DNA of 64,000 nucleotides, taken from positions 169,290-233,289 of the forward strand of contig JAPMXV010000022.1 in the NCBI GenBank assembly GCA_026936335.1. Direction: 5' to 3'. Shown here in pieces: positions 27,362-46,696 of this stretch (its first letter is position 1; the number at the start of each line of letters is the position of its first letter). Position numbers and translations under genes: made by a program. The DNA comes from Mantamonas sphyraenae STR306 (taxonomy: Eukaryota > Protista > CRuMs). Below the pieces are notes generated by a model, which saw only the letters and a program-made list of their open reading frames with translations, was not told the origin of the DNA and made no database searches.

Positions 27362-27474
27362 TGACCAGTGAAGCGGCAGCACCGGTGCAGGCAGGAAGGC
27401 GGGGTGGGTTTTGTTTTCGAAGCAGCCGCAGTTCGCCCCAGCATCGGCAACCCAAAAAAAGAACACATACACAA

Positions 27475-28689
27475 ATGAAGCTGTTTGTTGCACTTGTGTT
27501 GGCCATGCTGGCCGTGAGCGCTGTTGCTGAGACCGCCGAGGAGAAGCTCGAGGTCGCTGCCAACGAGCTGAACGCGGAGCAGGAAACCACCCAGTCTGCA
27601 GGCGAGCAGGAAAGCGCCGCCGAGGACACCAACGACGTCGAGGATGAGGATGAGGATGAGGATGAGGATGAGGAGGCGGAAGCGTTTGAGGACGACGACG
27701 AGACCGCCGACGAGGAAGACGAGGCTGCTGCTGATGAGGAGGATGAGGTGGAAAGCGAGGCTTCGACCGACGCCGAGGACGTGGCTGCCATGGACTCCAC
27801 CCCGGAGGAGGACAGCGAGGAGGATGACTCTGACCTCAACGACTCTGACTCGGACTACGACACCCAGGACATCATGGACTCAGAGGAGCGCATTTCGCAC
27901 CGCCTCGAACCGGAAGGCGGCTCTGGCCCTCTCCCTCGCCCTCGCACCCGCGACCTCAAGGGCGAGCTTGCCAACCTGGTCAACAACCTCGGCAACATGT
28001 GCCCCGGTGTCCGTCGCAAGAGTAGCAGCTGCAAGAACCTGAGCAGTACGTTGACAGGGCCCTGCCAACCCGTGTTTTCCGTTTGCGTCCTGCGGCTTTT
28101 TTCTGCCTTTTTTCGCCACCGCCGCAAACACACCACAAATCCTGTTCTCCTGCATGCCAGTAGAGTGCATGGCACGTACAGACACAATGTCTGTCTGGCC
28201 CACGCTTGTGTACACCTTGCGATGATTATTCGGTGACCTGTACACGTGCCCATGGACGGCACAGCAGCGGAAACACCTCAGCGACGCCGAAAACCCTCTC
28301 ATCCATTGCTCGCATCCTTGTTGTTTCCTCCTCCACACACCGCCCCGGGCGCATGGCACACGTACACTCACACGATGGATCTCCTCACAGGCTACACGTC
28401 GTGCCCCAACACGCCCCAGGACTTCAAGTGGCTGTCCGATGCCTACCGTGCGTGCGGCCACGTGCCTGCCATCCGCGATGCCTGGAACATGGCTCGTGGT
28501 GAGCCGTTCAGCCTGTGCCGCTACGACTGCAAGCAGAGCACGCTTGTGTCTGCCCCGCCCAGCGCCAAGTTCAAGGAGCTCCTCAAGGACCTCAAGGACA
28601 CCGACGACATCCAGGATAGCGACGACAACGCCGACGCCAACAAGGACATGGGTGGCAGCGGCTGGTGGTGCTGCTTTGGCTGGTGCTAA
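27475..28689 (+). CDS. Secreted acidic precursor with 6-Cys domain and WWCCFGWC tail, paralog A; intron 28046..28390
   Basis: Signal peptide MKLFVALVLAMLAVSAVA, D/E tract, spliced C-x9-C-x8-C-x16-C-x20-C-x3-C, and terminal DMGGSGWWCCFGWC*. Confidence 0.85.
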
Positions 28690-28775
28690 ACTCAGCCGTC
28701 ACAGAAACACCCTTGCATGTGCGTCATCTTGACATGCGAAGCAATGCAAAGGTGTTGATTTCGACTCTCCCCTTC

Positions 28776-31700
28776 TCACCTTCGGCGATGCTCAAACAGG
28801 GAAAACACGAGCCGGTACTCGTCGATCATGACACGCACGGCTTCAACGGCAAGCGCAGCCTCGTCGACGTCGTCTTGGGTGTTGTTGTTGGTGTTGGTGT
28901 TGCTCTTGCGTCCGCTGCTGCCTCCCTCTCCGTGGGCGGAGGCAGAGGAGTCTGCAGAGGCAGGAGGAGGCTTGATGAGACGAGGAGCCACAATGGCAGC
29001 GAGGTCTGCGCTTGCATAGCCGTTGTGTGATGCGTGACTGGCGACATACTCGAGAAAGTCGCACAGGAAGAACACGACGAGGTAGTTGGCCATGGGAAGG
29101 TAGCGCACACACTTGGCAACCATCATGGTACGTGCACTTGCTTCTGGGATGCTTGCGGCGGCCATGATCATGTCGTACAATTCATAGGTGAGCAGCGGTT
29201 CCACGAGACTGTCGAGGAAGGTTAGCAGCAGGGTTGCCACTGCGCGTGCCTGGGTCTCCTCCTGGGCAAGGTGCAACAGGGAGGGTTCGGCACCGCGGTC
29301 AAACAGGGCTCGCAACTGTTCCACATCGTTCTTGCGTGCTGTTCCAGGCTCATAGATGCCCGGAAGGGTCAACACCTGGTGTTGGGACAGGTACTGCACG
29401 GGACCACGTACCACCCAGGGCACCAGTTCGACGTCGAAATCCACACCGCTTGCCACAATGGTCATCCTGGCCATGCCTCTGTCTGCATTGTCCTCCTGCT
29501 GCGATTCCAGGGCGGAGGCGGCGTTGCTCAAGGCCTCTGCGTTGATGAGCATGCTGATGTGTGCACCAAACACCTTGCCCTGCCCACGGATGAGTTGGGT
29601 GTCCAACACACTGAGCATGCTGGCAATGGAGTTGCGATTCTTCCTGCTGGCACGCATCGACTGTTCCGCCTTTTCCACGTCGTCCTCGTTCAACGCATCG
29701 TGCACCGCTCGCATCTGTTTCACGTCCAACTGCTCCAATGCACGCAACCCAATGCCATCCGTGAGTTGCACGTCCGTACCCGCTCGCAACAGCGTCAACA
29801 CCGTCTCCAACGCCTCCGAACTGCCACGTCGGGCAAACACCTCGCATGCAAGATGCAACGGTGTCTGCATGCGCTTGTTCAACGCATTCACATCCACAGG
29901 CGCCCATCGTTCCTTCTTCTTCACTCGGAACTGGTCCAAATCCAGCAGCAGCAGCACCGTCGGTGCACTTCCGCTGCGAGCCGCCAGATGCAACGCTGTG
30001 TTGCCCTCGTCGTCCGGAACATGCACATCGATCCTCTCCTCCTCCTTTCGTTGCAATCCATACAGAAGCATCAGTTGCACCATGCTGCTTGATCCCGCTG
30101 CACATGCGAGGTGCAACGCCGTGCTTCCGCTTTTGGTCCTTTGGTTCATATCCAACCTGCTGGTGCTGGTGGTGCTGGTGGTCCTGCTGGTGCTGGTGGT
30201 GCTGGTGCTGGTGTGCTGTTCCCCCTGTCCTCCCTCTCCTTGTCCTTGCGGATCCACACGTCGGGTCAACCGTGCGGTCAGCCTGCTGAAACCAGACGCA
30301 GACGATGATGATGACGATGAGGTGGTGGTGGTGGTGGTGGAGACCGTTGATCCCTTGTCCTCCACACTGGCAGCCATGGACCTTCCCTCATCATACCCCA
30401 ACAACAGCGCAGCCACATCCTCATGGCCATGGGTCACTGCTGCACACAAAGCCGTCATGCAATCGCCATACCGGGCGGTGTTGATGTCCACCGGCCTCCC
30501 TTCCTCATCCTTATGGTTCGTCAGGATGTCTCGTACTGTATCCACATCCCCTGCTGCTGCTGCATCCACCATCCTCTGTCCTGCATCCTCCACCAGGATG
30601 TGCTCCTGCACCAGTTTGCCCCTTTCCCGTCTCTGCACGAGATGCGCCCCGAGTTTGTCCCCCAGTCGTGCTCGCTCCAATGACTGCATGTTCCCCTGCA
30701 GTGCGGGTGATGTGTGTCCAGACCCTCCCAGTAGGATGTGTTGTTCTCGCAGCCGTTGTGGGCCTGGCCGTTGCGCAAGCATCATGTCCAGCCGTGCCCC
30801 AATCTTGGCTTTGTCCACCGCCTTGGCTGCTTCCAGCGACCCACGCGCTGTCCCGCTGCTGCTTTGGCCCCCGTTGCCAGCCTTACGAGGCGGAGGCGGC
30901 TTCGGTTTCCATCCAGGCTGCATATACATGCCCTTGGCTGTGTCTCCTCCTCCTCCCACTCCACTGCTCTCACTGCTCGTGGTGGAAGAAGACGAAGAAG
31001 ACAACGACGAGGACGAGGACGCCGTGCCTCCGTTTCCGCCCTCTCCTGGTGTCTCTTGCCTCATCCCATGCTCCGCCGTATCTACACTCTGCATGGTTGG
31101 GTGTGTTTTGATCACCACCTTGGGCTTCCTTGCACGTAGCATGCTCATGGATCTGTTTGTCAGCGCCCTATCCTTCGGCTTCCCTCCTCCCTCCTCTTCT
31201 TCCTCCTCCTCTCCTTCCTGCCTTGTTGTTGCTGCTGCTGCTGTTGTTGTTGTTGTGCCATCCACACTGTCCACTCCGTCTCCCCTGTTGGTATTCACCA
31301 GTGCTGCCTTGCCCTCCCAGTACATCAGTGCCTCACCAGTGATGACACTCTGGTGCACGGTGTGCTTGCAATTCTCACACAGCACCCCGTTGCTTGTGCT
31401 CGGCAGGAAACGCACACAGTCACACACCAGACACACATTCGCTTCATCCACCTCACCCATGCCTCTCTCTCCTTCTCCCTTGTCCGCAACTGTCCTTCCC
31501 TGCGCTTGCGGTTGTGGCGGTGGTTTCGGCGGAGGAATGGACGGCCGAGCCGAGCTGGCCTTCTCCGCCTCCACCTGCCCTGCTTCTTCCTCCTCCTCCT
31601 CCTCCTGCTGCTGCTGCTGCACCGTCTCCACTTGCGTATGTGTCTCTTCCCTTTCCTGGCCCTGTGTCGTTGTGCTTTTGCTTCCGTTGTTGCTCCCATC

Positions 31701-32141
31701 CACCTGCCAGGGGGCACTCTGTCGTCCGCCGCCGCCTGCCTTTCGCGGAGGTGGCAACTTGGGTTTGCTCTGCGGCTGCTCTGTGCGTGCAGACCCGCCC
31801 GTTCCTTCGGCCGTGTCATTGTTCTCCCCGCCACCACTACTGGAGCCATTGCTGTTGCCATTGCTGCTGCTGTTGGTGCCCACATAGGGGGCAGGAGGCG
31901 TGCGAGAGGCTGGCAGTTTGGGTTTGATGCTGGTCTGCCACTTGGGGGTGCGTGTGACACCCTCCATGCGACCTGCCCCAGAGTGCATCTGCCATGGCGA
32001 CATTGCCACCTCGTGGGACGTGTGATTGCAGTTTACACACAGCTTGCGGTTGCTTTCGCTCGGCACAAAGCTGGTGCACGTGCAAATCCCACACGGGTTT
32101 CTGTCCCCCATTCCTGCGTTGTTTTGCCTCTGCGCGAGCAT
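28776..32141 (-). CDS. Multidomain signalling protein: two Cys/His fingers, two RPEL-like motifs, ankyrin repeats and a RhoGAP-like domain
   Basis: CGICTCTSF..CVNCNH and CLVCDCVRF..CENCKH; QRPGPQRLREQHIL and QRRERGKLVQEHIL; ankyrin GSTALHLA, GNTALHLAA and QTPLHLAC; RhoGAP FG...VPWVV...EPLLTYELYD...LP.AN. The start may be 32111. Confidence 0.85.
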   Translation of the reverse strand: MLAQRQNNAGMGDRNPCGICTCTSFVPSESNRKLCVNCNHTSHEVAMSPWQMHSGAGRMEGVTRTPKWQTSIKPKLPASRTPPAPYVGTNSSSNGNSNGSSSGGGENNDTAEGTGGSARTEQPQSKPKLPPPRKAGGGGRQSAPWQVDGSNNGSKSTTTQGQEREETHTQVETVQQQQQEEEEEEEAGQVEAEKASSARPSIPPPKPPPQPQAQGRTVADKGEGERGMGEVDEANVCLVCDCVRFLPSTSNGVLCENCKHTVHQSVITGEALMYWEGKAALVNTNRGDGVDSVDGTTTTTAAAATTRQEGEEEEEEEGGGKPKDRALTNRSMSMLRARKPKVVIKTHPTMQSVDTAEHGMRQETPGEGGNGGTASSSSSLSSSSSSTTSSESSGVGGGGDTAKGMYMQPGWKPKPPPPRKAGNGGQSSSGTARGSLEAAKAVDKAKIGARLDMMLAQRPGPQRLREQHILLGGSGHTSPALQGNMQSLERARLGDKLGAHLVQRRERGKLVQEHILVEDAGQRMVDAAAAGDVDTVRDILTNHKDEEGRPVDINTARYGDCMTALCAAVTHGHEDVAALLLGYDEGRSMAASVEDKGSTVSTTTTTTSSSSSSSASGFSRLTARLTRRVDPQGQGEGGQGEQHTSTSTTSTSRTTSTTSTSRLDMNQRTKSGSTALHLACAAGSSSMVQLMLLYGLQRKEEERIDVHVPDDEGNTALHLAARSGSAPTVLLLLDLDQFRVKKKERWAPVDVNALNKRMQTPLHLACEVFARRGSSEALETVLTLLRAGTDVQLTDGIGLRALEQLDVKQMRAVHDALNEDDVEKAEQSMRASRKNRNSIASMLSVLDTQLIRGQGKVFGAHISMLINAEALSNAASALESQQEDNADRGMARMTIVASGVDFDVELVPWVVRGPVQYLSQHQVLTLPGIYEPGTARKNDVEQLRALFDRGAEPSLLHLAQEETQARAVATLLLTFLDSLVEPLLTYELYDMIMAAASIPEASARTMMVAKCVRYLPMANYLVVFFLCDFLEYVASHASHNGYASADLAAIVAPRLIKPPPASADSSASAHGEGGSSGRKSNTNTNNNTQDDVDEAALAVEAVRVMIDEYRLVFSLFEHRRR

Positions 32142-32193
32142 ACAGAGAGGATAAGAGAGAGAGAGAGAGTGTGTGTGTGTGTATGGTCATGCA

Positions 32194-34878
32194 TTAGTCA
32201 TCATCTTTGGGCACAGTGCATGACCACGATCGGTCGGCAAAGGCCATGAGGACATCCGCAGGACGTCGTGAGGGCAGGTTGAGTTCATGGTCGACCAGAG
32301 TGAGGGTGAACAGACGCAACGAGTCGTCGCCACTGAGCATGGGTGGTTGTTGCACGTCATCCAAGTCCCCAAAGAGAACAGCGGTACAACCGGGAAGGTG
32401 GGGGGTGTTGTGCGACGTGTTGATGGGCACGTAGGCAAACATGTCTGCGTTGGCCTTGGTGGCATCACTCATCCAACTCGTGTGTCGGAATTGATCGCGA
32501 TTGAGGAGGTGGAGTGCCACACGGAGGGGGTTGGTGGTCTTGTTGCTACTGCTGCTGCTGCTGCTGGTGTGTCCCCTGTTCTTGCCTGTGCCCTGACTCT
32601 TGCGTTTGTCGAGGAGGGACACCACCAAGGCATTGGAAGGCAAATGCAGCATGAGCATGGGCGGGTTCAATGACACCGTGTGCAACCCGTCCACCAGCAC
32701 ACCCAAGGGTTGAGCACCACCACGAGCTGCACACGCCGTGAGCACGCATTGGGCGTGCGGCATCCCTGTGTACGTGGTCACCACTCCAGAGCCGCCGCCA
32801 CGGTTGGATGTGGTCGATGATGATGCGGTGCTGCTCCTCTGCGATGAGCGCACAGGCACCGCCAACTTGGACAACGGATACCAGCCACGTTGCACACGCT
32901 GCAACACACGCTCCATGCTCACCCCAACGCCCAAAGCCTCCTCCACGTCGCAAACACTACACACCACCATCAGATGGTCTCCTGCAGGAGCCACGTGTAC
33001 CATGCGGCATGTCAACGAGTACAACATCGCATCCTGCTGTCCTTCCAGCAAATCCACCTCATGGCTCACACTGCATGCCTGTGCAAGTTCTGTCTGGTCC
33101 ACACTCAGGCCATGCACAACCAATGTGGATGACTCGTCGTGTTCCCAGTGCGACTGCAGCAGAAGGGCCAGCTCCGAGTTGGCCATGACGTTGAAGTAGA
33201 CACATGTGGACGAGGCAACCACCACAGAGGACATGGTGCACACGTAATCATTGCCACATTGGAGCACATGGATGCTGCTGGGCACAAGTCGCATCAGTTG
33301 GCGCAGGCTTGTCAATCGCTTGCGCACAGCCTGCGACTCACGCTGGGCCTTGCGATCCATGAAGCCCACTCCGCTGCCGGAAGAGGTACCACTGCTGGTG
33401 TCGCCACTGTTGCTGTCCTCCTCGCCATGGTCTGCGCTGGTGTACACCATGCCGCCGTCTTGTCCTTCGCGCGAGTACACCCAGTAATCGAGGCCAGTCA
33501 GGTCCAGCGAGTCGAGCCATTGGGCAGCCTCGCTGGCACTGGCATGGGTCATGGCTGCCGTGGCCAGGGCGTCTGCACGTGCACAGTCTGTGTATCGGAT
33601 GGTGACACTGGCCACACTGTGCTTGCTCATCTTCATCAGACTCTGGGTCTCACGGTCCCAGATGTGATGGTAGCCAAACTTGTAGCTCTGCACGTAGTCA
33701 CCCGATGTCACCACACACTGGCCGTGGGCCACCCCAATGGTTTCCATCACCTCGGCCTTCCACGACGACGATGAACTCACTGTCGAAGAGAGAGAGGGCG
33801 ACGACGACGATGACAATGATCCGTCACCATCCTCCTCCTCCTCTTCATCATTTTCATCATCATCATCCTCCTCATCATCATCGTCATCACCAGCAGCCTG
33901 TTTGTTCAAGGCTGACCAGGCAGCAAAGACGGTGGCAAGGGAAGGTGGTTGGAACAAGGCACAGCGCCATTGCCTATGGACATGGTCACCCAACACAGCA
34001 ATGTCACCACCCCAATCCATCATGGCACTTGTGTATCCATGGCTCTGAAGGGCATCCACCACAGCCTGCACACCCTGTCCCTTTGCCACCCCTCCCACAT
34101 CCAACAACATGTCCCCTGCATGCGACCCTGCATCCATGCTCACCACCGCCTCGTCTTCCTCCACTTCCACCTTGTCCTTCCATCCCATGGCCCAATTGGC
34201 ACACACGTCGTCAATCTCCTGCGGCGTCGGCGTCCGGTTCTCCTCCGACAATGTCTGCTTCCACAAGCGCATGAGAGGTGCCATGGTGGGATCAAACCGT
34301 CCTCCAGTCATTTTGACTGCCCATTGTGTGTGAAGCAGCAGGGTGTGCAGGAACCCAGACACAGGTTGCCGGGTGTTTGCTCCAAGTGCCGCCGTGAGTC
34401 CGCTCACTTCCGATTCTGGGTTGTACTGGTTGCTGTGTGCGTACACACGGTCAAACACTGCCCGCAACACCTCCTCCACCTCCCCTGCCTCGGTTTCTTT
34501 GTCTGCATGCACCTTGAGGGTGAATGGAACCGTCATGGCAACGCCCTGAAGCACCACGAAGCCCTCTGTGTCCTGACTCACACTCTCCACCACCATACTC
34601 GGCGATTGCATGTGCCCCTGCACCTTTCTCTCCATGGCACCATTCCCACGCCCGCTGTGCTCATTGTGTGCACTGCCCAACAATAGGCGAGGCATGGCAC
34701 CGTCGTGAACGGGCTGTGTCTGCTGGGGTTGTTCATCCTCACGCGCAGCCACACGGCGCAGGCCCCCTGGAGGTCCACTCAGCAGTGACGACGATGATTT
34801 CGTGGACATGGACGCCCGTTTGCGTTTATATTCATCAGAGAGCACCAGCGATGCTGACGTCTGTGCATCCCAGCTCAT
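32194..34878 (-). CDS. apbE: ApbE-family FAD:protein FMN transferase fused to two flavin-reductase-like domains
   Basis: AMTVPF, YNPESEVS, GRFDPT, LDVGGVAKG, DWGGDI, VTSGDY, YHHIWD and ADALATA. C-terminal LRQLMR..PSSIHV, AGDH and VSLNPP resemble flavin reductase. A start at MSWDAQTSAS (34878) avoids overlap with the upstream gene. Confidence 0.88.
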   Translation of the reverse strand: MSWDAQTSASLVLSDEYKRKRASMSTKSSSSLLSGPPGGLRRVAAREDEQPQQTQPVHDGAMPRLLLGSAHNEHSGRGNGAMERKVQGHMQSPSMVVESVSQDTEGFVVLQGVAMTVPFTLKVHADKETEAGEVEEVLRAVFDRVYAHSNQYNPESEVSGLTAALGANTRQPVSGFLHTLLLHTQWAVKMTGGRFDPTMAPLMRLWKQTLSEENRTPTPQEIDDVCANWAMGWKDKVEVEEDEAVVSMDAGSHAGDMLLDVGGVAKGQGVQAVVDALQSHGYTSAMMDWGGDIAVLGDHVHRQWRCALFQPPSLATVFAAWSALNKQAAGDDDDDEEDDDDENDEEEEEDGDGSLSSSSSPSLSSTVSSSSSWKAEVMETIGVAHGQCVVTSGDYVQSYKFGYHHIWDRETQSLMKMSKHSVASVTIRYTDCARADALATAAMTHASASEAAQWLDSLDLTGLDYWVYSREGQDGGMVYTSADHGEEDSNSGDTSSGTSSGSGVGFMDRKAQRESQAVRKRLTSLRQLMRLVPSSIHVLQCGNDYVCTMSSVVVASSTCVYFNVMANSELALLLQSHWEHDESSTLVVHGLSVDQTELAQACSVSHEVDLLEGQQDAMLYSLTCRMVHVAPAGDHLMVVCSVCDVEEALGVGVSMERVLQRVQRGWYPLSKLAVPVRSSQRSSTASSSTTSNRGGGSGVVTTYTGMPHAQCVLTACAARGGAQPLGVLVDGLHTVSLNPPMLMLHLPSNALVVSLLDKRKSQGTGKNRGHTSSSSSSSNKTTNPLRVALHLLNRDQFRHTSWMSDATKANADMFAYVPINTSHNTPHLPGCTAVLFGDLDDVQQPPMLSGDDSLRLFTLTLVDHELNLPSRRPADVLMAFADRSWSCTVPKDDD

Positions 34879-34915
34879 GGGGCCCCTGTGTCTTGCTTGC
34901 TTTTGCCTTGCCTCG

Positions 34916-36805
34916 TCAGGCGAAATCGTCCCCAGACGACCACCCGTCATCGTCATCGTCGTCGTCGTCTCCCAAGGAACCTACCATGGACAGAGGCGTC
35001 TCCTCCACACGGAACCGGGGTGGTTTACGCCGGACCACGGGTGTGTGGGGCTCGTCGGAGGAGAGCTCGTCGTCGTCGTCCTCCTCCTCCTCCTCGGCGG
35101 TGGGTGATTCTGGCACGACGACACTGTCGTCCATAACCAAGGGTTTGCGTGTGCGTTTGGCAATGGTGACACTGCTGACCAGCACAGGGGACATGTCCGA
35201 GTGATCATCCTCACCCACGTCTGGGTGTTGAGTGCTCTGTGTCTGATGTTGCTGTTGCTGTTGATGTTGTTGTTGTTGTTGTCCAGCATGGTGTTCCCTC
35301 TGTGGTGTGGCTGTGGGTGTGGCTGTGGGTGTTGCCTGTTCGTCATCCAACAACACCTGTGCTCGTCGTCGTCGTCGTCTCCGTTTCCTCCTCACTGTGG
35401 CAAGTGCCACCAAGTCGTCCTCACTGTCCCATCCGTCATGCAATGCCTCCTCATCCACACTCTCCCTCAGAAACGCCTCTTCCAAGTCCCGTTTGCCACT
35501 GGGCGATGGATCTGCCTTGCGCCTGGTGTCCTGTACATGTGTCAAGGCCCTGTGTTGCACCCTCTCCTCCATGGCTGTGCGTGGACTCAGTGACGTCTCC
35601 ATGGGCATCTTCACCCTGGGTTGCACCGTGCGTGTACGTGTGCTCCTCTCCTCCGCCCTGCGTTCCATCAACTCGGCCATCCTCCGCCTCCGCTCCTCCA
35701 ACTGCTCCCGTTCCATCAGATCGATGGGGTTGCCCTCCAACGCCATCATCGATCCCAACAACCCATCCCCACCACCCGCTTGCTGATCCTGATGCCCTCC
35801 CTGTCCCACACTGAAGATGGCCTGCCTGCGTCTCTCCTTGGCTTTGTGTTTGCACGCTGTGCAGGTCCAGGAGCTGTGTGTTCCCCCTCGGCTTCCCCTG
35901 CGTGCCTCCCTCCCCTGGTCCTGTTCACTCATACAATGCAAATGGGCAGCCACCCCATGATGGGAGGAACACTTGCTGCACAGCATGAATGTCTGTGCGT
36001 GTGCTCCAATGGCACACGTGCAATACTCGCACAGAAGGAACCCCTGGCCCGCACGCACACGCACCGCCACAGAACGCTCCAGGGCATCACACAGCGTGTG
36101 ACCCTGCATGTCGACTGCCTCATACACTCTCCGTGCAGAGGCCATGCATGCTTGCACGTCGCCCAGTAGGGCGTCGCGACGGGAGGGTGTCTGACAATCG
36201 GGACACCAGAAGGAAGACGGAGGCACCACCAGCAACCCGGGCATGTTGGGAACACAGTAGGTGTGCACGGCCTGGTCACACGTGTCACATAGCAACAGAC
36301 GAGCATCGTCGTCGTTGCGTTGACACTCCATACACACACACAACGCCGCTTGGGCGTCGTGGTGGTTGGTCAAAAGATCCTGATCCGATTGCAGGTGCTC
36401 GGGAACAGCCTGTTTCTTGGGCGAGACGGCTATGCGACGCAACACGCCACTCTCTGGCAACAGACACTCAATGTATGTCACCTCCTGCTTGCACAGAGGA
36501 CACAGATTGGTCACCTGACACCAGGAATGGATGCAACTGACGCAGAACCGATGCCCGCAGGCCAGTTCACCCGCTCGCTCAATGGTTTCCAAACACACCG
36601 CACAGGGTGAGGAGGAACCCGTGCCAGTGGACGACGTGCTCTCTGTGGTCGAGGAGGACGATGACGATGATGGATCCCTGCTGTTGCTGTTGCTTGTGTC
36701 TGCACTGCTGCTGCTTGTGGTGAAATAGGGCGATGTAAAGGTGCTGGTCATCGACTCCTCCCGCACTCCAGCGGCTGCACTGCCTCCACCAGCGCATTTC
36801 TTCAT
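34916..36805 (-). CDS. RING plus tandem PHD finger protein (PHRF1-like architecture)
   Basis: RING CAVC..ACGHRFCVSCIHSW....LCPLCK; PHD CMEC...LLLCDTCDQAVHTYC...WCPDC; second PHD CEYC..CSKC..HLHC..WTCTAC. Confidence 0.88.
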   Translation of the reverse strand: MKKCAGGGSAAAGVREESMTSTFTSPYFTTSSSSADTSNSNSRDPSSSSSSSTTESTSSTGTGSSSPCAVCLETIERAGELACGHRFCVSCIHSWCQVTNLCPLCKQEVTYIECLLPESGVLRRIAVSPKKQAVPEHLQSDQDLLTNHHDAQAALCVCMECQRNDDDARLLLCDTCDQAVHTYCVPNMPGLLVVPPSSFWCPDCQTPSRRDALLGDVQACMASARRVYEAVDMQGHTLCDALERSVAVRVRAGQGFLLCEYCTCAIGAHAQTFMLCSKCSSHHGVAAHLHCMSEQDQGREARRGSRGGTHSSWTCTACKHKAKERRRQAIFSVGQGGHQDQQAGGGDGLLGSMMALEGNPIDLMEREQLEERRRRMAELMERRAEERSTRTRTVQPRVKMPMETSLSPRTAMEERVQHRALTHVQDTRRKADPSPSGKRDLEEAFLRESVDEEALHDGWDSEDDLVALATVRRKRRRRRRRAQVLLDDEQATPTATPTATPQREHHAGQQQQQHQQQQQHQTQSTQHPDVGEDDHSDMSPVLVSSVTIAKRTRKPLVMDDSVVVPESPTAEEEEEDDDDELSSDEPHTPVVRRKPPRFRVEETPLSMVGSLGDDDDDDDDGWSSGDDFA

Positions 36806-36838
36806 CTCTGCTTCTTCCACGTTGTTGCCTCTTTAGTG

Positions 36839-37543: not shown

Positions 37544-37665
37544 TGGCGTGGACAACAATGCATTTCTACGATAAATGTACGAATTTTGATTGAGACGAAA
37601 ATACTTGTTGGATGAGAGTTGGTATAATTTATACATGAATCAAAAAAGACGCCTATGCTGCATGC

Positions 37666-38274
37666 TCAAGCCTCGACGAGAGACACGCCACACTCCACAT
37701 GGTTTCCAGCCTCTGCAATAAGGGCTTCCGAGTCCAAGGAGGCGTAGCAGGAGGCGCAAAAGTCGAGGCCGCACTTTTGGTCAGCGTAGCGAGCGCCGGG
37801 TTCAATGTCGTTCATGCAGGCGTCGCACATGTACTCTGCATCGCCACCGTCGCCGAGACCGCCGGATTCCTGCATAAATGAGTAGAGCTGGTCGGCGGAG
37901 ATGTCTTCTCCACCCGACTGGGCCAGCAGCATGGCGTAGGCCTCGTCGTCGAGGTAGTCTGAAGCATGGGTTGCGTTTGCCCAGCCTTCCTCACCCAACT
38001 CGACCTCGCCCACCAGGTGGGAGATCTCGTCGGCCATCTCTGCAGCCACAGCCTCGTCCTCCTCTGTCTGCACGTCTGTGGATGAGGAGGAGGAGGAGGA
38101 AGACGAGGATGAGGAGGAGGAGGAAGAGGAAGAGGAGGATGCAAGGGCGCTCTGGACGTCGCTGGTGCTGGAAGATGTGTCAACGGATGTGGTGACGTCG
38201 GTGGTGGTTGTAGCGTCACTGCCAGAGTCCTGGGTGGCGAGTGCGGTGTTTGTTTCGCTGGTGTCGTGGCTCAT
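37666..38274 (-). CDS. Small acidic Ser/Thr-rich protein with C-terminal ZZ-like zinc finger
   Basis: YMCDACMNDI..GARY....CGLDFCASCY resembles a partly degenerate ZZ finger. Confidence 0.65.
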   Translation of the reverse strand: MSHDTSETNTALATQDSGSDATTTTDVTTSVDTSSSTSDVQSALASSSSSSSSSSSSSSSSSSSSTDVQTEEDEAVAAEMADEISHLVGEVELGEEGWANATHASDYLDDEAYAMLLAQSGGEDISADQLYSFMQESGGLGDGGDAEYMCDACMNDIEPGARYADQKCGLDFCASCYASLDSEALIAEAGNHVECGVSLVEA

Positions 38275-38383
38275 GGCGGGTGTGGAGAGCGAGAGAGATG
38301 ATCGTGGTGGAAGGGCGGCCGCAGGGACAAAGCAACCCACTCCGCTGGACACCACCACACACGCACGTACACAGAGACACATC

Positions 38384-39931
38384 ATGCAGGACCTGACTGG
38401 GGACGGAGGGGTGACCAAGGCGGTGCTGTATGCCCCCGATGGGGCAGAGGAGATGGAGCGACCGCAGAAAGGGGCCAATGTGGTGGTGGCGTACACAGGA
38501 GTGCATCGAGGGAAGCAATTCGACACGGCGCAAAGCTTCCAGTTTTCGCTTCTGAGTGGACAGGTGATTGAGGGATGGGACGTGGCGGTGGCATCGATGG
38601 TGTTGGGTGAAAAGTCGTTGTTTGTGGTCAAGTCTGAGTATGGGTATGGGGACTTGGGGGCGGGAGACCTGCCGCCTGGAGCGGAGCTTGAGTTTGAGAT
38701 TGAGCTGTTGGGATTCACAAACCCTGTGGATTCGGTGGCAGCTGTGAATGAGGTGTTGCACAAGGAGTTTGCAGTGAGTGTGAAGGAGGTGGTGGCCACA
38801 AGCCAGAAGAAACGCGGGGGCATTGTAATTTCGCGGAACTACGTGAACAGCAATGCGCAGGTGATTGCCAACCAGTTTGACTTTGTGGATTCATTGAGTG
38901 AGGATCGCATGGATGAGTTTCTGGACATGTTGGACTCCTCGTTTGCCCACGAGGCGGACCAAGAACGGGATCGCTTCCGGGACATCCTTCCCTTTGCCCA
39001 CAACGCGGTCATGGTCGATGGCGAGTACTTTAACGGCTCCTACATCAATCTTCCTGTGGGGACAGATGAGGAGGGGGACACGGGAGGAGCAGGCAGTGGC
39101 CCAGGGGGTCTGTTGTTGCAATGGCCAGGTTCAACCAGCACATCGTCATCGTCATCGTCATCATCGTCATCATCGTCATCGTCATCATCGTCATCGTCAT
39201 CATCATCGTCCGAGGACGGGGATGTGAAGGATGGGACACAGGGCGAGGTGAATGTGCATCAACAGTACATTGCCACGCAATGGCCGCTGGAGGGGACGGT
39301 GGGAGACTTTTATCGCATGCTTGTGAGGGAAAGGGTGCGTGTGGTGGCCGTGTTGGCCAATGACACCACGGAGAGTGTGCAAGCATACTGGCCCACCGAC
39401 GAGACGGATGATCTGGTATGGTCTGATGGCATGCGGGTGCATCTGGTGAGCATGGAGGACTACACCGACAAACAACGCACCCGTGTGCGTGTGTTGGACA
39501 TCACAGAGGGTGGTGATGATGATGACGATGGTCGAGCCTGGCGTGTCCTTCACCTCCAGTTCACCGCATGGGGTGACTTTGGCGTGCCAACAGAACGGGA
39601 CTTTCGCTGCTTCCTGGACACCTTCCAGGAGCAGAGTGGTGCGTTTGTGGATGGTCTTCAGGATCAACAGGTGGACAAGGAGGACCTGGGTCCCATGGTG
39701 GTCCACTGTCGCGCAGGAGTGGGACGCACAGGAACGTTTGTGCTCGTCCACTGGTTCTCCACCATGGTGGCGCGTGTGCTGGCCCAAACGGGTGCACACA
39801 AGCAAGACGTGGTCATCAACGTGGCCGCTGCTCTGTGGGCGTTGCGTCAACAACGAGTGCAGATGGTGCAGACGGGAGCACAGTACAAGTTTGCCTGGAG
39901 GATGATCCGTGATCTGCTCGACGCTCTCTGA
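38384..39931 (+). CDS. FKBP-type peptidyl-prolyl isomerase fused to a classical protein tyrosine phosphatase
   Basis: FKBP: DLTGDGGVTK, YTG..FD, GQVIEGWD..V.SM..GEK, YGYG, PPGAELEFEIELL. PTP: DILPF, YFNGSYI, YIATQWP, DFYRM, WGDFGVP, VHCRAGVGRTG, MVQT..QY. All in one uninterrupted ORF. Confidence 0.9.
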   Translation: MQDLTGDGGVTKAVLYAPDGAEEMERPQKGANVVVAYTGVHRGKQFDTAQSFQFSLLSGQVIEGWDVAVASMVLGEKSLFVVKSEYGYGDLGAGDLPPGAELEFEIELLGFTNPVDSVAAVNEVLHKEFAVSVKEVVATSQKKRGGIVISRNYVNSNAQVIANQFDFVDSLSEDRMDEFLDMLDSSFAHEADQERDRFRDILPFAHNAVMVDGEYFNGSYINLPVGTDEEGDTGGAGSGPGGLLLQWPGSTSTSSSSSSSSSSSSSSSSSSSSSSSEDGDVKDGTQGEVNVHQQYIATQWPLEGTVGDFYRMLVRERVRVVAVLANDTTESVQAYWPTDETDDLVWSDGMRVHLVSMEDYTDKQRTRVRVLDITEGGDDDDDGRAWRVLHLQFTAWGDFGVPTERDFRCFLDTFQEQSGAFVDGLQDQQVDKEDLGPMVVHCRAGVGRTGTFVLVHWFSTMVARVLAQTGAHKQDVVINVAAALWALRQQRVQMVQTGAQYKFAWRMIRDLLDAL

Positions 39932-39982
39932 GGCCATGGGAATGAACGCTGGTGTGGTGTTGCGGTGAAAGAGCCAAGGTGT

Positions 39983-40765
39983 TTACTCCTCACTAAAGTG
40001 GGTGGGTGGGTGGGTGGGTGGGTGGATGGCGCACGACCATGCGTGTGGGTCCCTTGTCAGCACACACACCGAAATAAACGGGATGGGGCAAAAGCGGAAA
40101 CGGGAACACGGCCACACAAACTCGCGCCGTACGCCTGCCATGGCCATAGCGGACGGTTGCACAGACGGTGAAGCGACACAAGCTGTGTGTGCGCACGTGT
40201 GCATGCACCCTATGTGGTGTGCAACGCTGTGTGGCACGACCACATTGCCGTGAAAGGCGCTGGCGGAAAAAAAGGGGCGCAAAAAAAAAAAGAATTGGGC
40301 TCAAACGCACGTCTTCTCCTCCTCCTCGGGCTGCTCCTCCTCCTTCTCCTGCTCCTCGGGCTCCTCCTCGTCCTGCTCCTGCTCCTCGGGCTGCTCCTCG
40401 GTCTGCTCCTCGGTCTGCTCGTCCTCCAGCTCGGGCTCCTCCTCCTCCTCGGAAGAGTACAGCTCGGAATCGTCGGCAGAGTCGGCTTCACCGCGCTCCA
40501 GGGCGTCCAGCTCGGCCTCGGCGTCCTCGACGTCATCGTCCTCAAGCTCAGACAGCTCGTCCTGGTCGTCCTCCTTGTCCTCGGCGGTCAGCTCCTCCTC
40601 AGCCTCGCTGTCCTCGGGGGCGGCGGCGGCCTGGGCCTCCTCAGCCACGGGCTGCTCCTGCACGGGGGCGGCCGATTCCACGGTCACCTCGGCGGGGGTC
40701 TGCTCCACAGACACAGCCAGGCCAGCAATCACCAGCATCAGCACAATCAGGGTGGTCTTGATCAT
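39983..40765 (-). CDS. Secreted, extremely Glu/Asp-rich protein; intron 39993..40310
   Basis: Signal peptide MIKTTLIVLMLVIAGLAVS followed by an almost purely acidic chain. A GTGCGT donor, GCTGAC branch point and TTTAG acceptor give the C-terminus EKTEE*. Confidence 0.75.
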
Positions 40766-40846
40766 GAGTGTTGTTGTCAAAAGTTGTTTGGGTTGGGTGT
40801 GCAGGGGAAGGTGGGTGGAGGGCCAACCAATGCGTTGTCATTCATT

Positions 40847-42549
40847 TCAAAAGGCAGAGTGCATGCACTTGCCACCAAACACCTCCATGGCCATGTTGGC
40901 GTCCATGGAGCAGTGGATGCAGATCTGAGCCCCGAGCTCGTCCACAGTCATCGGTTCGCCTTCGCCCGTGTGGTGGAAGTCGCAGGTGGCATCTTCACCC
41001 TCGAAAACCTCACCACACTTGGCACAGTACATGCCTCCGGTGAATCCCCCGTTGTCCGTGTTGGTGTTGGTGTTGGTGTTGGTGTTGGTGGTGTTGGTGG
41101 TGGTGGTGGTGGACGTTGTGCTGTTGTTGGAGGTGTTGCTGGTGTTGTTGCTGGTAGTGCTGGTGGTGCTGGTGTTGGACGTTGTGTTGCTGCTGTTGCC
41201 ACTGCTGCTGGCATTGGAAGTGTTGGACGAGCTTCCACTTCCACCCTTGCCAGACTCCAGATCGTCCAGCTCCTTGTCCAGACCCTCCAGCTCCTTGTCC
41301 AGGGCATCGGCTTCGGTCTTGACACTTGCAATGTCGCCCTTGATCTTGTCAAAGGCAGCCTTGGATGCGTTGTGGATCTCCTCTGCGGCCGAGGCCCGTT
41401 GCTCCAGCTCGTTCAGCACCAGCTCCTTGTCCTGTGCCTCCTTCTCCAAGTCCTTCAGACTGGCCTCTGCCGTCTTGAGCTGCTCCGTGAGACGGTACAC
41501 CTCCTGCTTGCACTCCACAATGGACTTTTGTGCCGCATCCACCTCGGCCTGCGTCGTCGCCGTCTGGTCACGGATGACCACCCGTTGCGTGGCTGCCTCA
41601 TCCACCGCACTTGATGCGTCTGCCATGGCCTTGCTCAGTCCTGTCATCCGTTGCGCCAAACCCTTCTTCTTGTCCAGCGCCTGTTGACGCTTCCGTGCCA
41701 CCTCACCCAGCTTCTTCTTGCGTGCCTCTTCCCGTGCCGCTGCCTCTGCTGCTGCCTTTTGGTCCTCCTCGCTTGTGTTGTTGCCTGCCTTGTTGTTGTT
41801 GTTGCTGCTGTTTGATGACGACGATCCCGTGCCTTTGTTGTCGCCATTTTGCCCATCCTCCACCATGAACGACTTGAGGGACCAGTCGTTCTCTGTGTGT
41901 GGGATTGGTGAGGGAGGGGGGGTGGGAGGGTGTTTTCGGCATGTGAGCAACACGAGGGTTGGTTCGGGGCAAGCATTGTGTGCGTGGCAAGCGTGGGCTC
42001 CGTTCGCAGTCCTGGGAAAACGAGCGCCAATTCCCCTCTTGCTGCAAGGGACAAAACGCACCGGTGACGGTCAGACGCAGCACCTTTCCGTCGCTGAGAC
42101 GGATGGCCTCGGCAAGTTCCTACGCATGGGTAGTGTGCACAAGCAAATTGCACTTGCGTGTGAGTGGTGTGGGCCAGCGTGTGCAGGTGGAACGGAATCG
42201 GAATCGGAATTGGGTGGAACGAAAGCGCAAACACGGGGAAGAGACGGGGGGGAGGGGAAGAAGGAACACTTGGGGTCACCAGAGGCGTGTTGGGTAAACA
42301 CATACTTCGTCACACGTGATGGTGCACCAGTCATCGTCCTCGTCCTGGTACTTGAGACCAAACTCGGCGGCCTTGAGGTCGTACAGCTGGGCGACCTGGG
42401 TTTTCACAGCCTGAACGTTCTTGCTGTTGTCAGGCAGCTGGATGCGGCGCACGTCGTTGTTGAATTTGACTTTGAGTTTCTGTGGGACATGGGTGTGTTA
42501 GGTAAGGGCGGGGGATTGGAGAGGGAGGAGGGAGGAGTCCACCAACCAT
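40847..42549 (-). CDS. PB1-domain, coiled-coil, C-terminal Cys/His protein; exons 42549-42547 (ATG only), 42479-42306, 42119-42062, 41892-40847
   Basis: Spliced M|KLKVKFNNDVRRI...LKYQDEDDDWCTITCDE|ELAEAI gives the PB1 basic Lys plus OPCA motif. A long heptad region and terminal CAKC..CDFHH..CIHC..CMH follow. The PB1 exons are absent from the ORF track. Confidence 0.82.
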
Positions 42550-42655
42550 CGCGTTTGGAGTTGAGTCGGGAGTTGGTTTGGAGGAGTGTGGGCAGATGGA
42601 CCCGAAAGCTATTCCTATTTGCATTCATTGTTGGCATGGGGAAGGACGCATTCAT

Positions 42656-44035
42656 TCACCACTCGTCACCCACCTCGTCGCTGTATGCGGACAGAGTGCA
42701 GTGTGGGAGAGTGTCCCGGAGATGAACGATGAGGGATTCCGAAATGCCGTACACACCATCGCCATGGAGGGTGGAGAGGGAAGGGCAGGAGTCCACGAGT
42801 GCCTGGATGGAAGTGTCTGTGACGGCTTTGGCGTGGTCGAGGGAGAGGTATTGGAGGAGAGGGGCGTGCTTGGCAAGAGCCAGGAGGACGTCGTCGTCGA
42901 CGGCAGAATGCATGTGGTCGAGTTGGAGAGATAAGAGGTTGGGCATGGCAGAGAGGGCAAGGGCGAGGGTGTGAGGGGAGAGGTCGTTGGCGTAGGAGAG
43001 GTCGAGATGTTCAAGGGAGGAGCCATGGTGGATGAGAGCACCAAGGCAGGCATCGTCGAGGGCATCGACAGAGGCGAGATGGAGGTCACTCAGGTGGGTG
43101 TTTGTGGATAGAAGGGCAGCAAGGCCGTCGGGATGGATGGGTGGGCTGTTGTTGAGGTTGAGGGAGTGCAAGTGGGTGAGGGAGGATGCAATGAGGGCCA
43201 AGTCACTGTCATCGATGGTGGGTGGGTTGGCAATGTCCAGATGGGTGAGGAGGGTGGCACTCTGGGCCAGATGGGCAAGACCTGCACCGGAGTAGTGGGC
43301 GCAGTTGGCCAGGGTGAGCGTGTGGAGGTTGGGGCAATGGGAGGCCAGAGCACGGAGGCCATGGTCATCGACTTTGGTGTGGGTGGCATGAAGGGTGTGC
43401 AACTGAGTGCATCCATGCACCAGTGGCTCCAGGGCCTCGCCAGTGAGCCCGCGTACGTTGTGGGCAGACACACAGCGCAGGAGGGTGTGGTCCTGCATGG
43501 CGGTGCAAAAGTCGATGGAAAGGTGGGGCATGTAGTCCACAATGAGGGTGGTGAGGTTGGGAAAGGCGGGGGCGGCGTCGGCCAGGGCGGCGTCGGACAC
43601 GCGGAGGTAGCTGAGGTCCAGGTGGGTCAGGGACGGGTAGGAGAGGGCAAAGATGGAGCGTAGGCCCTGGTCACCCAGTTGCATGCATCGATGCAGGGCA
43701 AGATGGGCCAGCATGTCGTGACATTGGCACAGGGCGTTCTCCACAAGACCGGCGGCACCCATGTTGGTCAGGCGACCACTACAAAGGGAGAGGAAACGGG
43801 TGTGGGTCATGTTGCGAGCCAAGTCCACCAGAGTGGCATCTTCCAGGCGTGGGGCGTCTGTGGAGAAGTCGACACGCTCCCAGGCCAGGGGATCGTAGGC
43901 GGCGGCGTAAAAGTCGCGGCAAACACGTGCAGCCACACATTTGTCAAACACAGAGAGGTGGGTAAAGACGTGGCAAATGAGCTCAACAGGCAGGTGGAGG
44001 ATGGTCATGGGACCATCTCCGTCGTCGTCGTCCAT
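42656..44035 (-). CDS. F-box/LRR protein (FBXL family)
   Basis: LPVELICHVFTHLS..DK..AARVCRDF...AYDP..W followed by Cys-containing LRRs (LTHLDLS, CPNLHTLTLANC, LEHLDLS). Confidence 0.9.
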   Translation of the reverse strand: MDDDDGDGPMTILHLPVELICHVFTHLSVFDKCVAARVCRDFYAAAYDPLAWERVDFSTDAPRLEDATLVDLARNMTHTRFLSLCSGRLTNMGAAGLVENALCQCHDMLAHLALHRCMQLGDQGLRSIFALSYPSLTHLDLSYLRVSDAALADAAPAFPNLTTLIVDYMPHLSIDFCTAMQDHTLLRCVSAHNVRGLTGEALEPLVHGCTQLHTLHATHTKVDDHGLRALASHCPNLHTLTLANCAHYSGAGLAHLAQSATLLTHLDIANPPTIDDSDLALIASSLTHLHSLNLNNSPPIHPDGLAALLSTNTHLSDLHLASVDALDDACLGALIHHGSSLEHLDLSYANDLSPHTLALALSAMPNLLSLQLDHMHSAVDDDVLLALAKHAPLLQYLSLDHAKAVTDTSIQALVDSCPSLSTLHGDGVYGISESLIVHLRDTLPHCTLSAYSDEVGDEW

Positions 44036-44110
44036 GGGTGTTGGGGTAATATTGGTTGTGCCCACGGTGGCCCAAAACAAAACAAACCAAACCAAACCAC
44101 AAGACACAGG

Positions 44111-45278
44111 ATGATCAAGTCGAGCTGGGTCCTTGTGCTGATTGCCATGCTTGCATTCAGCTGCGCGTACGCTGAGGAGGAGAAGCAGGAGGAGGAGACT
44201 CTGAGCAACCTGACCGAGGCAGAAGCCGAGGTGGAGGAGCTGAAGGAGGAGGAGGCTGACCCGCAGGAGGACGCCGTTGCCGATGCCGAGCTTGAGAACA
44301 AGCTGGACGAGGTTAGCGACGAAAGCGCCGACTCTCTGGACGAGGAGGAGACGGAGGATTCCGACGAGGTGGAGTCCAGCGATGACACCGACGAGAACGA
44401 TGAGAACGATGAGGATGCTGACGAGAGCGATGACGAGGACGACGAGGAGGACAGTGACAACGAAGATGAGGAGGATGCCGTGCAGGACACCTGGTTCCGC
44501 CGCCGCCGTCGTCGTGGCGAGAGCTTCGTGAAGAAGGTCATGGGCAAGGTGCACAAGGCCCGCCTGAACAACGCCATGTCGGAGGCCAGCAAGCAGTGCT
44601 GGGCCGCTAGCGGCATCCAGCGCACGTGCAAGAAACTGTCTAGTGAGTTGTGGGGCGGGAGTGGGACCGGTGGGGGCAGTGTGGCAAGAGAGAGGGTGGA
44701 ATGGTGGTTTGCCCCCTTTTTTTTTGTGGGTGTGGGTTGCGTGCTAAGGAGGCTGACCACGCCCGTGTTTGCAGAGGCATCCGCTTGCCCGACCACCGTG
44801 TACGCCTTTTCGGTGATTGCTCGCGCTTACAAGTCGTGCCGCGACGTCAAGGCCGTCAAGGAGGCCTACAAGCTGGCGGTAAGTTGGCGCGCGCATTGAG
44901 CCCGTTTTTTTTCTTTGCGGATGCGGAAAAACATGTTTCGGGGCGTAGTACTGACGCACGACGATGGGGTGTGGCACACAGACGAGCAGCCCGTTTGACA
45001 AGTGCCATTACAACTGCAAGAGCATGGTTGTGAACGTGAAGAGGTCGATTGGCCCTCAGCGCTTCCGGGAGAAGCTGGCGTCGTCTGCGCTTCGCACCCA
45101 GATGCACCGTCTGCGTGACGAGAACGACGAGGAGGACGAGGACAACGATGAGGATGATGAGGATGATGAGGATGAGCAGGAGGCGCAGGCCAAGCTGCAG
45201 GAGAGCAAGGGTGAGGATGAAGTGGAGGACAAGGACATGGGCGGCGGAGGCTGGTGGTGCTGCTTTGGCTGGTGCTGA
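44111..45278 (+). CDS. Secreted acidic precursor with 6-Cys domain and WWCCFGWC tail, paralog B; introns 44643..44774 and 44879..44981
   Basis: Signal peptide MIKSSWVLVLIAMLAFSCAYA, D/E tract, RRRRRR, spliced 6-Cys domain, and terminal DMGGGGWWCCFGWC*. Confidence 0.85.
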
Positions 45279-45467
45279 TGAGGGGACTGTGCGACAGGCT
45301 TGGTTGTGAAGGAGAAAGGTGGGATCCGGAGTTGCACCCACCATGTTGGTGTGTTGGTGCAGCAGCATGGGGACCACAACCCCCTTTGCAACCCAAACAA
45401 AAAAACCAAAAACCACCCCCACTTTTTTTCCAAACCCATTGTCTCGTTTGGCCAAACAACCGGAACA

Positions 45468-46696
45468 ATGGTGAGCAACAAGGGCCTTTTTCTGATGCTG
45501 ATGATGCTGCTTGCACTGTGTGCAACGACAAGCTGGGCAGCCGACTCGACCTCTGAGGAGGAGGAGCAGTCGACGGACGTGTCGAACGACGAGGATTCGG
45601 AGTACGACGAGCTGGACAGTGAGGTGGACAGTGATGTGGAGGGCGTGGAGGAGGAGGACGACAACGCACGTCGCTTCCGCTACCGCGTGGTGCGCCGCTA
45701 CGTGTTCAAGAGGGCGAGCAAGAAGTCGAGCAAGAAGTCGAGCAAGAAGTCGAGCAAGAAGAGCACGGTGAGGGTGGCTGTGGCCACCAAGCCCAAGGTG
45801 CTGCCCATTGTGGCGGTGCCGGGCGTGAAGGCGAGCAAGGTGTCGGTGAACGTGGGAAAGAAGACGTTTACGTACGGCGGCACGACGTACCACGCGACGG
45901 CGGGCCAGGGCGCAGGTGTCACTGCGGTTCCGGGCCTGCTGCACGCGCTGGCCATGTCGTTTCAGCCCACCTTTTCGTGGCTGGTGGAGAACGCCAAGAA
46001 CGCCTGCCCGCAGGTGGGCACTGTGGCCGCTGGGTGCAAGTCGTTGACCGGTACGTGGGCGTTTTGTGTGGTTTGTGCGCAAGAGGAAAATCGGGGATAA
46101 TGTGCTTTTTTTTCGCAGGTTGGTCACGAGGGTAGTTCTGACACGGGAGAGGGCTGGGACACACGCACACACGCACACACGCACACACGCACACAGATAT
46201 GGTGGAGTGCCCCACTACCCCCGAGGCATTCAAGTGGCTGAGCCAAGCCAAGCGTCTGTGCCCCGACGCGGCAGCCGTGCAACGGGCTTGGGACGTGGCT
46301 ACTTCGGAGCCGTTCAGCCAGTGCCGCTACGACTGCCCGAAGAAGTCGCTGATGGTAGCACTGTCCATTCAGCCGGCGCAGTTTCAGGCAGCGCTGCCCT
46401 CGGTGTACCTTGCGCTGGCGCAGCCGATCCAGCCGATCCAGCCGATCATTCCGTTCCACGCCATCCTGCACGACTCTGAGAGCAGCGAGGACGAGGCGGA
46501 GGACGAGCTTTTGGACACCAACGAGAAGGAGCTGATGCGTGTGGAGGCACAGCTGGACGAGGTGGAGGACAGCATGGGCCAGGGATCTGTGTCGGACAGC
46601 TCTTCGGAGGACGACTCGGACAACGAGAACGATGAGGCGGTGGCTGATGAGGACCGTGGTGGATCCGGCTGGTGGTGCTGCTTCAACTGGTGTTAA
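45468..46696 (+). CDS. Secreted acidic precursor with 6-Cys domain and WWCCFNWC tail, paralog C; intron 46051..46196
   Basis: Signal peptide MVSNKGLFLMLMMLLALCATTSWA, D/E tract, RRFR, (SKKS)4, spliced 6-Cys domain, and terminal DRGGSGWWCCFNWC*. Confidence 0.85.

Follow-up and report, generated by a model that had tools for sequence, protein, structure and literature searches.

Several described systems resemble, each in part, the products of three genes (g1, g2 and g3) that we analyzed in a 64,000-nt stretch of DNA from the bacterivorous protist Mantamonas sphyraenae STR306 (contig JAPMXV010000022.1 of GenBank assembly GCA_026936335.1, positions 169,290 to 233,289 of the forward strand; hereafter the window, whose own numbering is used below for g1–g3). 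Alpha-defensin precursors, as examples of cationic Cys-rich host-defence peptides made with an anionic propiece, and amoebapores, which are saposin-like proteins from bacterivorous amoebae, resemble these products in their signal peptide, in an anionic pro-region that balances the charge of a small cationic disulfide module, in their fast-diverging paralogs and in belonging to a phagotroph. Granins and the granule-lattice and trichocyst-matrix precursors of ciliates are similar in their signal peptides, very acidic low-complexity regions and multibasic sites, in having a convertase in the genome and in being multigene. Euplotes pheromones are small secreted helical bundles with three disulfides, made as pre-pro-proteins in multiple variants; cnidarian minicollagens are secretory proteins with a propeptide and a short terminal Cys-rich motif, cross-linking being a possible parallel; and the precursors of basidiomycete lipopeptide pheromones (PF08015) pass, like g3, from an acidic stretch into a short Gly/Trp/Cys C-terminus.

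Each of these likenesses has its limits. Alpha-defensin precursors and amoebapores have another Cys spacing and no sequence or fold match to the Mantamonas family, and Pfam searches with exon translations (E ≤ 1) and with eight family proteins (E ≤ 0.1) gave no saposin or defensin match; in addition, the Mantamonas proteins carry a second acidic tract and a Trp/Cys-rich tail after the domain, and a corresponding activity is putative. Granins and ciliate granule precursors have no homology to the family, the literature searched records no secretory granule in Mantamonas, and the ciliate granule-lattice and trichocyst-matrix proteins have coiled coils or beta/gamma-crystallin domains as their framework. 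Compared with Euplotes pheromones, the Mantamonas proteins are much longer, have acidic tracts and the tail, differ in Cys spacing and have no such pheromone among the structural matches listed. The minicollagen end domain contains 6 Cys in ~20 residues, a different motif from the Trp-rich Mantamonas tail with its 3 Cys only, and the Mantamonas proteins are without collagen or polyproline. Unlike PF08015 precursors, the family has an endoplasmic reticulum (ER) signal peptide and a folded six-Cys domain, and no CaaX box. The family is a lineage-specific variant of a common kind of secreted cysteine-rich pro-protein, and its unusual part is the invariant C-terminal motif.

Three genes with a common intron and a six-cysteine domain

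Gene models of g1–g3 were obtained by reading the DNA directly and joining and translating the exons by script; the joined proteins were used for local alignment and counting only, and searches with the window genes were run exon by exon. All three genes lie on the + strand, g1 with exons 27475-28045 and 28391-28689 (289 amino acids), g2 with exons 44111-44642, 44775-44878 and 44982-45278 (310 amino acids) and g3 with exons 45468-46050 and 46197-46696 (360 amino acids), and each spliced frame runs without interruption from ATG to stop. The DNA and the joined-exon translations agree with an initial annotation, made from the sequence alone, on gene coordinates, on start and stop codons and on where the introns lie. 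All four introns are of the GT-AG type, starting with GT[AG]AGT or GTACGT and ending with CAG. One intron position is common to the three genes, in phase 1 and immediately 3' of C-K-x-L-[ST], and splicing leaves six domain cysteines with the same 9-8-16-20-3 spacing in each, so that both the shared intron and the exact pattern C-x9-C-x8-C-x16-C-x20-C-x3-C claimed for the spliced genes were found in three of three. The C-terminal end, GG[SG]GWWCCF[GN]WC, adds three cysteines and brings the total to nine. The features are as follows.

g1 exon 1, 27475..28045, + strand: signal peptide at 27475-27528, long acidic tract, Cys1 at 28000-28002, end in phase 1
g1 intron, 28046..28390, + strand: 345 nt, GTACGT...CACAG, phase 1, after C-K-N-L-S
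g1 exon 2, 28391..28689, + strand: remaining Cys domain (Cys6 at 28528-28530), acidic linker, tail GGSGWWCCFGWC at 28651-28686, stop
g2 exon 1, 44111..44642, + strand: signal peptide at 44111-44173, acidic tract, run of six Arg, Cys1 at 44597-44599, end in phase 1
g2 intron 1, 44643..44774, + strand: 132 nt, GTGAGT...TGCAG, phase 1, position as in g1, g3 and the contig-28 paralog
g2 exon 2, 44775..44878, + strand: middle of the Cys domain with Cys3 and Cys4
g2 intron 2, 44879..44981, + strand: 103 nt, GTAAGT...CACAG, phase 0, in g2 only
g2 exon 3, 44982..45278, + strand: end of the Cys domain (Cys6 at 45015-45017), basic and then acidic linker, tail GGGGWWCCFGWC at 45240-45275, stop
g3 exon 1, 45468..46050, + strand: signal peptide at 45468-45539, short acidic tract, long basic Ser/Lys-rich segment, Cys1 at 46005-46007, end in phase 1
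g3 intron, 46051..46196, + strand: 146 nt, GTACGT...CACAG, phase 1
g3 exon 2, 46197..46696, + strand: remaining Cys domain (Cys6 at 46334-46336), 111-residue linker that is acidic near its end, tail GGSGWWCCFNWC at 46658-46693, stop

A single RNA contig could be placed on g1, at 27704-27823 within the acidic tract; it has 7 mismatches and reaches no junction.

A multigene family in Mantamonas

The three genes are members of a multigene family that is known to date from Mantamonas only: this genome has eight such genes, and at least five transcripts come from Mantamonas plastica, where the family is expressed. Protein and profile searches of the whole M. sphyraenae genome yielded five members beyond g1–g3. 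A profile of domain plus tail, run against 1.84 billion representative proteins, gave five true matches (E 2e-107 to 2.5e-11), all of them M. plastica Trinity transcripts in EukProt, and two further marginal matches that lay on the acidic tract and were discounted; the profile search that the initial annotation had proposed as a check thus returned M. plastica relatives and no others. All five M. plastica proteins have the same layout as the M. sphyraenae members, and together with the latter they form the set of 13 proteins used below. The matches in M. plastica, at E 3e-35 to 2.5e-11 with a profile built from the family, and the five further loci in the M. sphyraenae genome argue that the family is not a product of chance.

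The other loci also bear on the splice model. The contig-28 member has a phase-1 intron at the position seen in g1–g3, here after C-E-K-L-G, and three members that stand in tandem on contig 54 each have the domain on one exon. A divergent member on contig 35 has an uninterrupted domain; this copy is the minus-strand open reading frame (ORF) 1408-2097 of L025 (G000:C35:171968-175228), with the tail CCTWWCCFNLCR. The domain had been described as revealed only by splicing, which is wrong in view of the four single-exon paralogs; these intronless copies independently confirm the joined reading of g1–g3. Support for the splice model also comes from the M. plastica protein P0002, encoded with exactly this 9-8-16-20-3 spacing by a contiguous mRNA. 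A phase-2 intron just 3' of the signal peptide is present in the contig-28 and contig-54 genes and absent from g1–g3.

The Cys spacing, called invariant in the initial annotation, varies within the family: the contig-54 genes have 8-10-16-19-3 or 8-9-16-19-3, and one M. plastica protein has 9-7-16-19-3. The contig-35 protein is without Cys1 and Cys4 and has two extra Cys in the tail, so that it still has nine (four in the domain and five in the tail). The joint loss of Cys1 and Cys4 from this copy hints at a Cys1–Cys4 disulfide in the other members.

We also considered whether the genes are mis-modelled or chance ORFs in GC-rich DNA. Shadow ORFs of up to 442 amino acids do cover real genes on both strands (window 27361-28236, 44856-46184 and others), as is typical of GC-rich DNA, so that ORF length alone is no evidence of a gene here. 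Against such an artefact, for which we see practically no chance, stand the expressed homologues in M. plastica, the same architecture and consensus splice sites in eight paralogs, and the intronless copies.

The assembly used comprises 25,061,354 bases in 78 contigs with ~59% GC and TTAGGG telomeres; the published FALCON assembly of M. sphyraenae is given as 25.06 Mb in 78 contigs, with a GC content of 59.19% and an N50 of 375,077 (PMC10492846). A (TTAGGG)n repeat at window 63781-64000 is the end of contig 22, 17-36 kb from g1–g3. A subtelomeric clustering of the family was considered and rejected, since the contig-54 and contig-35 genes are internal. Many family introns have a CA-rich tract (ACACACAG or CGCACACAG) directly before the acceptor (window 46150-46196; ~940-957 and 1925-1936 of L009; ~1210-1220 of L011). 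The ATG of g2 is ~75 bp from the likely ATG of a divergent F-box/LRR gene on the minus strand (window 44035-44111), a distance so small that one very short bidirectional promoter probably serves both genes.

Protein layout, charge and conservation

Signal peptides were called from the 12-residue Kyte-Doolittle mean and the position of the first acidic residue, not with a dedicated predictor. By this measure all 13 N-termini are signal-peptide-like, with best means of 2.7-3.3, the first acidic residue not before position 19-29 and small residues ahead of it, in line with the initial view of g1–g3 as real paralogs with signal peptides. The region before the domain has a net charge of -16 to -64 in 10 of the 13 proteins. 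Runs of 5-11 Arg precede the domain in five proteins and RRR in one more; the other seven have no run of three or longer. The domain is 60-64 residues long (54 in the contig-35 copy) with a net charge of +4 to +12 in 9/13, and a variable, mostly acidic linker of 16-111 residues separates it from the tail. P_proprotein domains occur at two loci of the genome (103 and 64 bits), and the kexin/furin-like convertase is an ORF on contig 45 (L076:94-2394, G000:C45) with a Peptidase_S8 and a P domain. This convertase ends in an SH3 domain, which is unusual for the class.

The precursor layout of signal peptide, long Asp/Glu tract, basic segment, Cys domain, second Asp/Glu tract and conserved tail that had been proposed for g1–g3 is plausible. 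The N-terminal region that is anionic and the domain that is cationic in most members, and the kexin-like convertase in the genome, speak for it. The N-terminal region is strongly acidic in most proteins and not net acidic in g3, and the basic segment, present as runs of at least five Arg or as RRR in a minority, is not universal.

Within the domain, Cys3-Pro, the Phe seven residues after Cys3, Cys4 and Cys5-x-Tyr-x-Cys6 are nearly invariant across the family, and so are Gly, Trp and Cys in the tail. Compared in pairs, the domain cores are only 20-50% identical; the tree of the 13 domains is unresolved and no orthology was assigned. Where residues are conserved, their codons have become about half to fully randomised. 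For the domains of g1–g3, Nei-Gojobori estimates gave nonsynonymous divergence (dN) of 0.52-0.76 and synonymous divergence (dS) of 0.57-1.64, with dN/dS (NG86) of ~0.5-0.9. For the tails, dN is 0.04-0.21 and dN/dS 0.14-0.2 in the two pairs with finite dS, the g2–g3 dS being saturated. These values are suggestive, and only suggestive given the small numbers and a codon bias that deflates dS, of a constrained scaffold and tail and a fast-changing domain surface. The initial annotation was right to list a conserved tail, which is near-invariant, and gave too little weight to it: the Trp/Cys-rich tail is the most conserved part of the proteins.

This layout would also suit structural cargo of a regulated secretory organelle or of the extracellular matrix, such as an extrusome, a mucocyst-like granule or a gliding adhesive layer, where the acidic tracts, as Ca2+ binders, would condense together with the cationic domain inside the granule, and the odd tail Cys would cross-link the molecules through intermolecular disulfides on release, as minicollagen ends do. 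The nine cysteines, an odd count kept even in the rewired contig-35 member, fit such a role, as do the very long Asp/Glu- and Ser-rich tracts beside basic segments, the convertase and a multigene family with tandem copies. The searchable literature documents no extrusome or granule for Mantamonas, however, the proteins have no coiled-coil or repeat scaffold like that of ciliate granule-lattice and trichocyst proteins, and for a lattice protein the domain surface evolves rapidly. On balance we consider structural cargo rather unlikely.

Predicted structure and fold comparison

The sequences folded with AlphaFold2 were the intronless contig-54 paralog b (from the domain to the C-terminus) and M. 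plastica P0002, rather than g1–g3. The models predict a four-helix bundle, three helices of which begin right after Cys-Pro, at a predicted local distance difference test (pLDDT) score of ~90 for paralog b and 82-89 for P0002. The acidic parts are predicted to be disordered: the linker of paralog b has low confidence, and the acidic tracts and linker of P0002 score below 55. Confidence rises again over the last 7-10 residues (pLDDT 88 and 78, respectively), and both models show the tail as a short helix with a beta-bridge to the residues after Cys6, so that the tail is predicted to fold back onto the domain. When domain and tail were submitted as two chains, the complex prediction scored 0.00, which we counted neither for nor against the tail contact. 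The disulfide-bonded helical domain anticipated for the family thus has its counterpart in a predicted helical, cysteine-braced structure.

The fold comparison returned generic helical bundles. No PDB entry reached E ≤ 0.001 with Foldseek, and the best Z scores from an exhaustive VIA-align search, 5.7 and 5.9, belong to helical bundles that are designed or unrelated, a level that helical proteins reach as background. No saposin-like chain was among the best 50 Foldseek PDB matches or, for either model, the top 50 VIA-align rows, and the Pfam searches at the thresholds given above had no match to SapB_1 or SapB_2. The three-helix fold of Euplotes pheromones was likewise absent from the Foldseek and VIA-align matches listed, very small targets scoring poorly in such searches. 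The initial annotation had stated that the Cys spacing fits neither saposins and amoebapores nor Euplotes pheromones, and neither group is among the fold matches listed; its suggested AlphaFold and Foldseek check has given a confident four-helix model with matches to helical bundles of a general kind. Membership in the plant non-specific lipid transfer protein (nsLTP) or prolamin-type 8-Cys class was rejected as well: the domain has six Cys without CC or CxC, and the Foldseek matches to nsLTPs are not significant (E ~5, TM ~0.3).

Sequence searches agree. Pfam gave no family beyond sub-threshold low-complexity matches, a profile search of PDB sequences gave acidic-tract noise only, and the ESM Atlas held no usable match to the family. 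In a word-based protein search with the whole of paralog b, acidic low-complexity candidates dominated and one true match was found; with domain plus tail of paralog b as the query, this search found none. The six-Cys domain is a new small domain without a Pfam family or structural relative, and the family is, as first supposed, undescribed, with no Pfam, PDB sequence, ESM Atlas or specific solved-fold match.

An extracellular signal or mating pheromone has to be weighed at this point. Either the helical domain would be the signal, as in Euplotes, or the Trp/Cys-rich peptide would be the signal with the domain as its carrier, and variable surfaces would encode specificity. The fixed Cys scaffold with fast surface positions (dN/dS ~0.5-0.9 in the domain and 0.14-0.2 in the tail) is consistent with this, and the acidic region and tail of g3 give a weak match to PF08015 (E 0.0075). 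That match stays below the cut-off (17.8 bits for g3 exon 2 against 22), concerns one gene only and is probably due to composition; membership in PF08015 was rejected on these grounds, with no match in the other members, no CaaX box and signal peptides in 13/13. The missing CaaX box and the ER signal peptides mean that fungal-type lipopeptide processing does not apply. There is, further, no consistent cleavage site ahead of the tail, sex is not documented for Mantamonas in the literature searched, and the eight paralogs are spread over four contigs instead of forming one variable locus. Taken together, these points make a signal or pheromone decidedly unlikely.

The C-terminal tail

The tail has the near-invariant form W-W-C-C-F-x-x-C. 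In M. plastica it reads WWCCWGWC, WWCQCFNIC, WWCCFGGCN or WWCCFTNSCGK, with GWWKCFGW in a divergent protein. Four members have residues beyond the last Cys (N, R, GK and KRPGSK). The last of these belongs to contig-54 paralog c (L009 2540-2587), whose WWCCFWPNC is followed by the six residues KRPGSK and may be a variant tail or reflect an unmodelled last intron. A pattern search of the whole genome found in-frame C-terminal WWCCF in the family only, five extra matches being out of frame or not C-terminal, which indicates that tail and domain always go together; a modular or general sorting tag common to other proteins was rejected for the same reason. The DNA pattern for GGxGWWCCF occurs at 31 places in metagenome contigs, all by chance and none with an acidic tract or in a C-terminal position, and the literature search for WWCCF returned no paper that uses the motif in a relevant sense. 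Because nine is an odd number, at least one tail Cys would be unpaired or engaged in an intermolecular bond.

Could the tail hold the proteins at the cell surface? No other part of the proteins is as hydrophobic or as conserved, it contains Cys, and the long acidic tracts would form a charged coat, so that the proteins might be held in the membrane by a hydrophobic, possibly lipid-modified tail and display polyanions. Only 8-9 hydrophobic residues follow the GGSG linker, as opposed to the ~15-20 of a glycosylphosphatidylinositol (GPI) or tail anchor, and a GPI anchor or membrane span was rejected given this short length and the polar or basic ends of some members. Counted from the end, the tail Cys occupy positions -1, -5 and -6 and not -4, and the CaaX box is missing; a tail in the lumen is, besides, out of reach of prenylation or palmitoylation in the cytosol. 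CaaX or Rab-type prenylation was therefore rejected on Cys positions and topology. The residues beyond the last Cys in the four members misfit a fixed lipidation box, and AlphaFold2 sets the tail on the domain, not free. A membrane-held surface coat is accordingly very improbable.

An alternative that we rate just as low is that the peptide G-G-S-G-W-W-C-C-F-G-W-C is itself the real product, a Trp/Cys cross-linked or otherwise modified signal or toxin from the secretory pathway, for which the six-Cys domain would serve as an internal carrier or as a scaffold for maturation, with the acidic linker as a spacer. As to membership among C-mannosylated W-x-x-W/C proteins, a DPY19-type C-mannosyltransferase (PF10034) had no match in the genome; control genomes likewise gave none, the exon-by-exon search being weak for this family. 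If true, the modified tail would be a new type of eukaryotic ribosomally made, post-translationally modified peptide system in a deep-branching lineage.

Discussion

The explanation that we favour, as a tentative one that may well prove wrong, is a secreted pro-protein effector whose active unit, the cationic domain together with the tail, acts on bacterial prey or membranes. We infer secretion and processing of the M. sphyraenae proteins from their sequence features. The proteins would enter the ER, where the domain would be oxidised to three disulfides, and the anionic region would neutralise and solubilise the mostly cationic domain during transport. Where a poly-Arg site is present, a kexin-like convertase would cut off the anionic region, and the released unit would then consist of the cationic domain and the hydrophobic Trp/Cys-rich tail. 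Its site of action would be the medium or the food vacuoles, not the cytosol; in the bacterivorous Mantamonas its most likely target would be bacterial prey, on which it may work as a membrane-active or surface-binding effector.

Several points weigh against this effector. The poly-Arg site is absent from 7 of the 13 members, and three domains are not cationic. There is no likeness to a known antimicrobial or pore-forming fold, the best Z of 5.7-5.9 being at the helical-bundle background. The contact of tail and domain comes from AlphaFold2 confidence only, on a shallow alignment, and the antibacterial role from charge, tryptophan content and feeding habit only. The M. sphyraenae RNA match is a low-complexity piece (27704-27823) and uninformative on junctions.

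Mantamonas belongs to CRuMs, a deep-branching and little-studied group in which prey handling, gliding adhesion and communication are almost unexplored. Should domain and tail be membrane-active, the family would amount to a host-defence-like effector that was invented independently; should the tail be a modified peptide, it would represent a new peptide-maturation system. On present evidence it is one among many orphan secreted cysteine-rich families. With its fixed disulfide scaffold, fast surfaces and conserved Trp/Cys tail, this lineage-specific family offers an entry point to the biology of Mantamonas.

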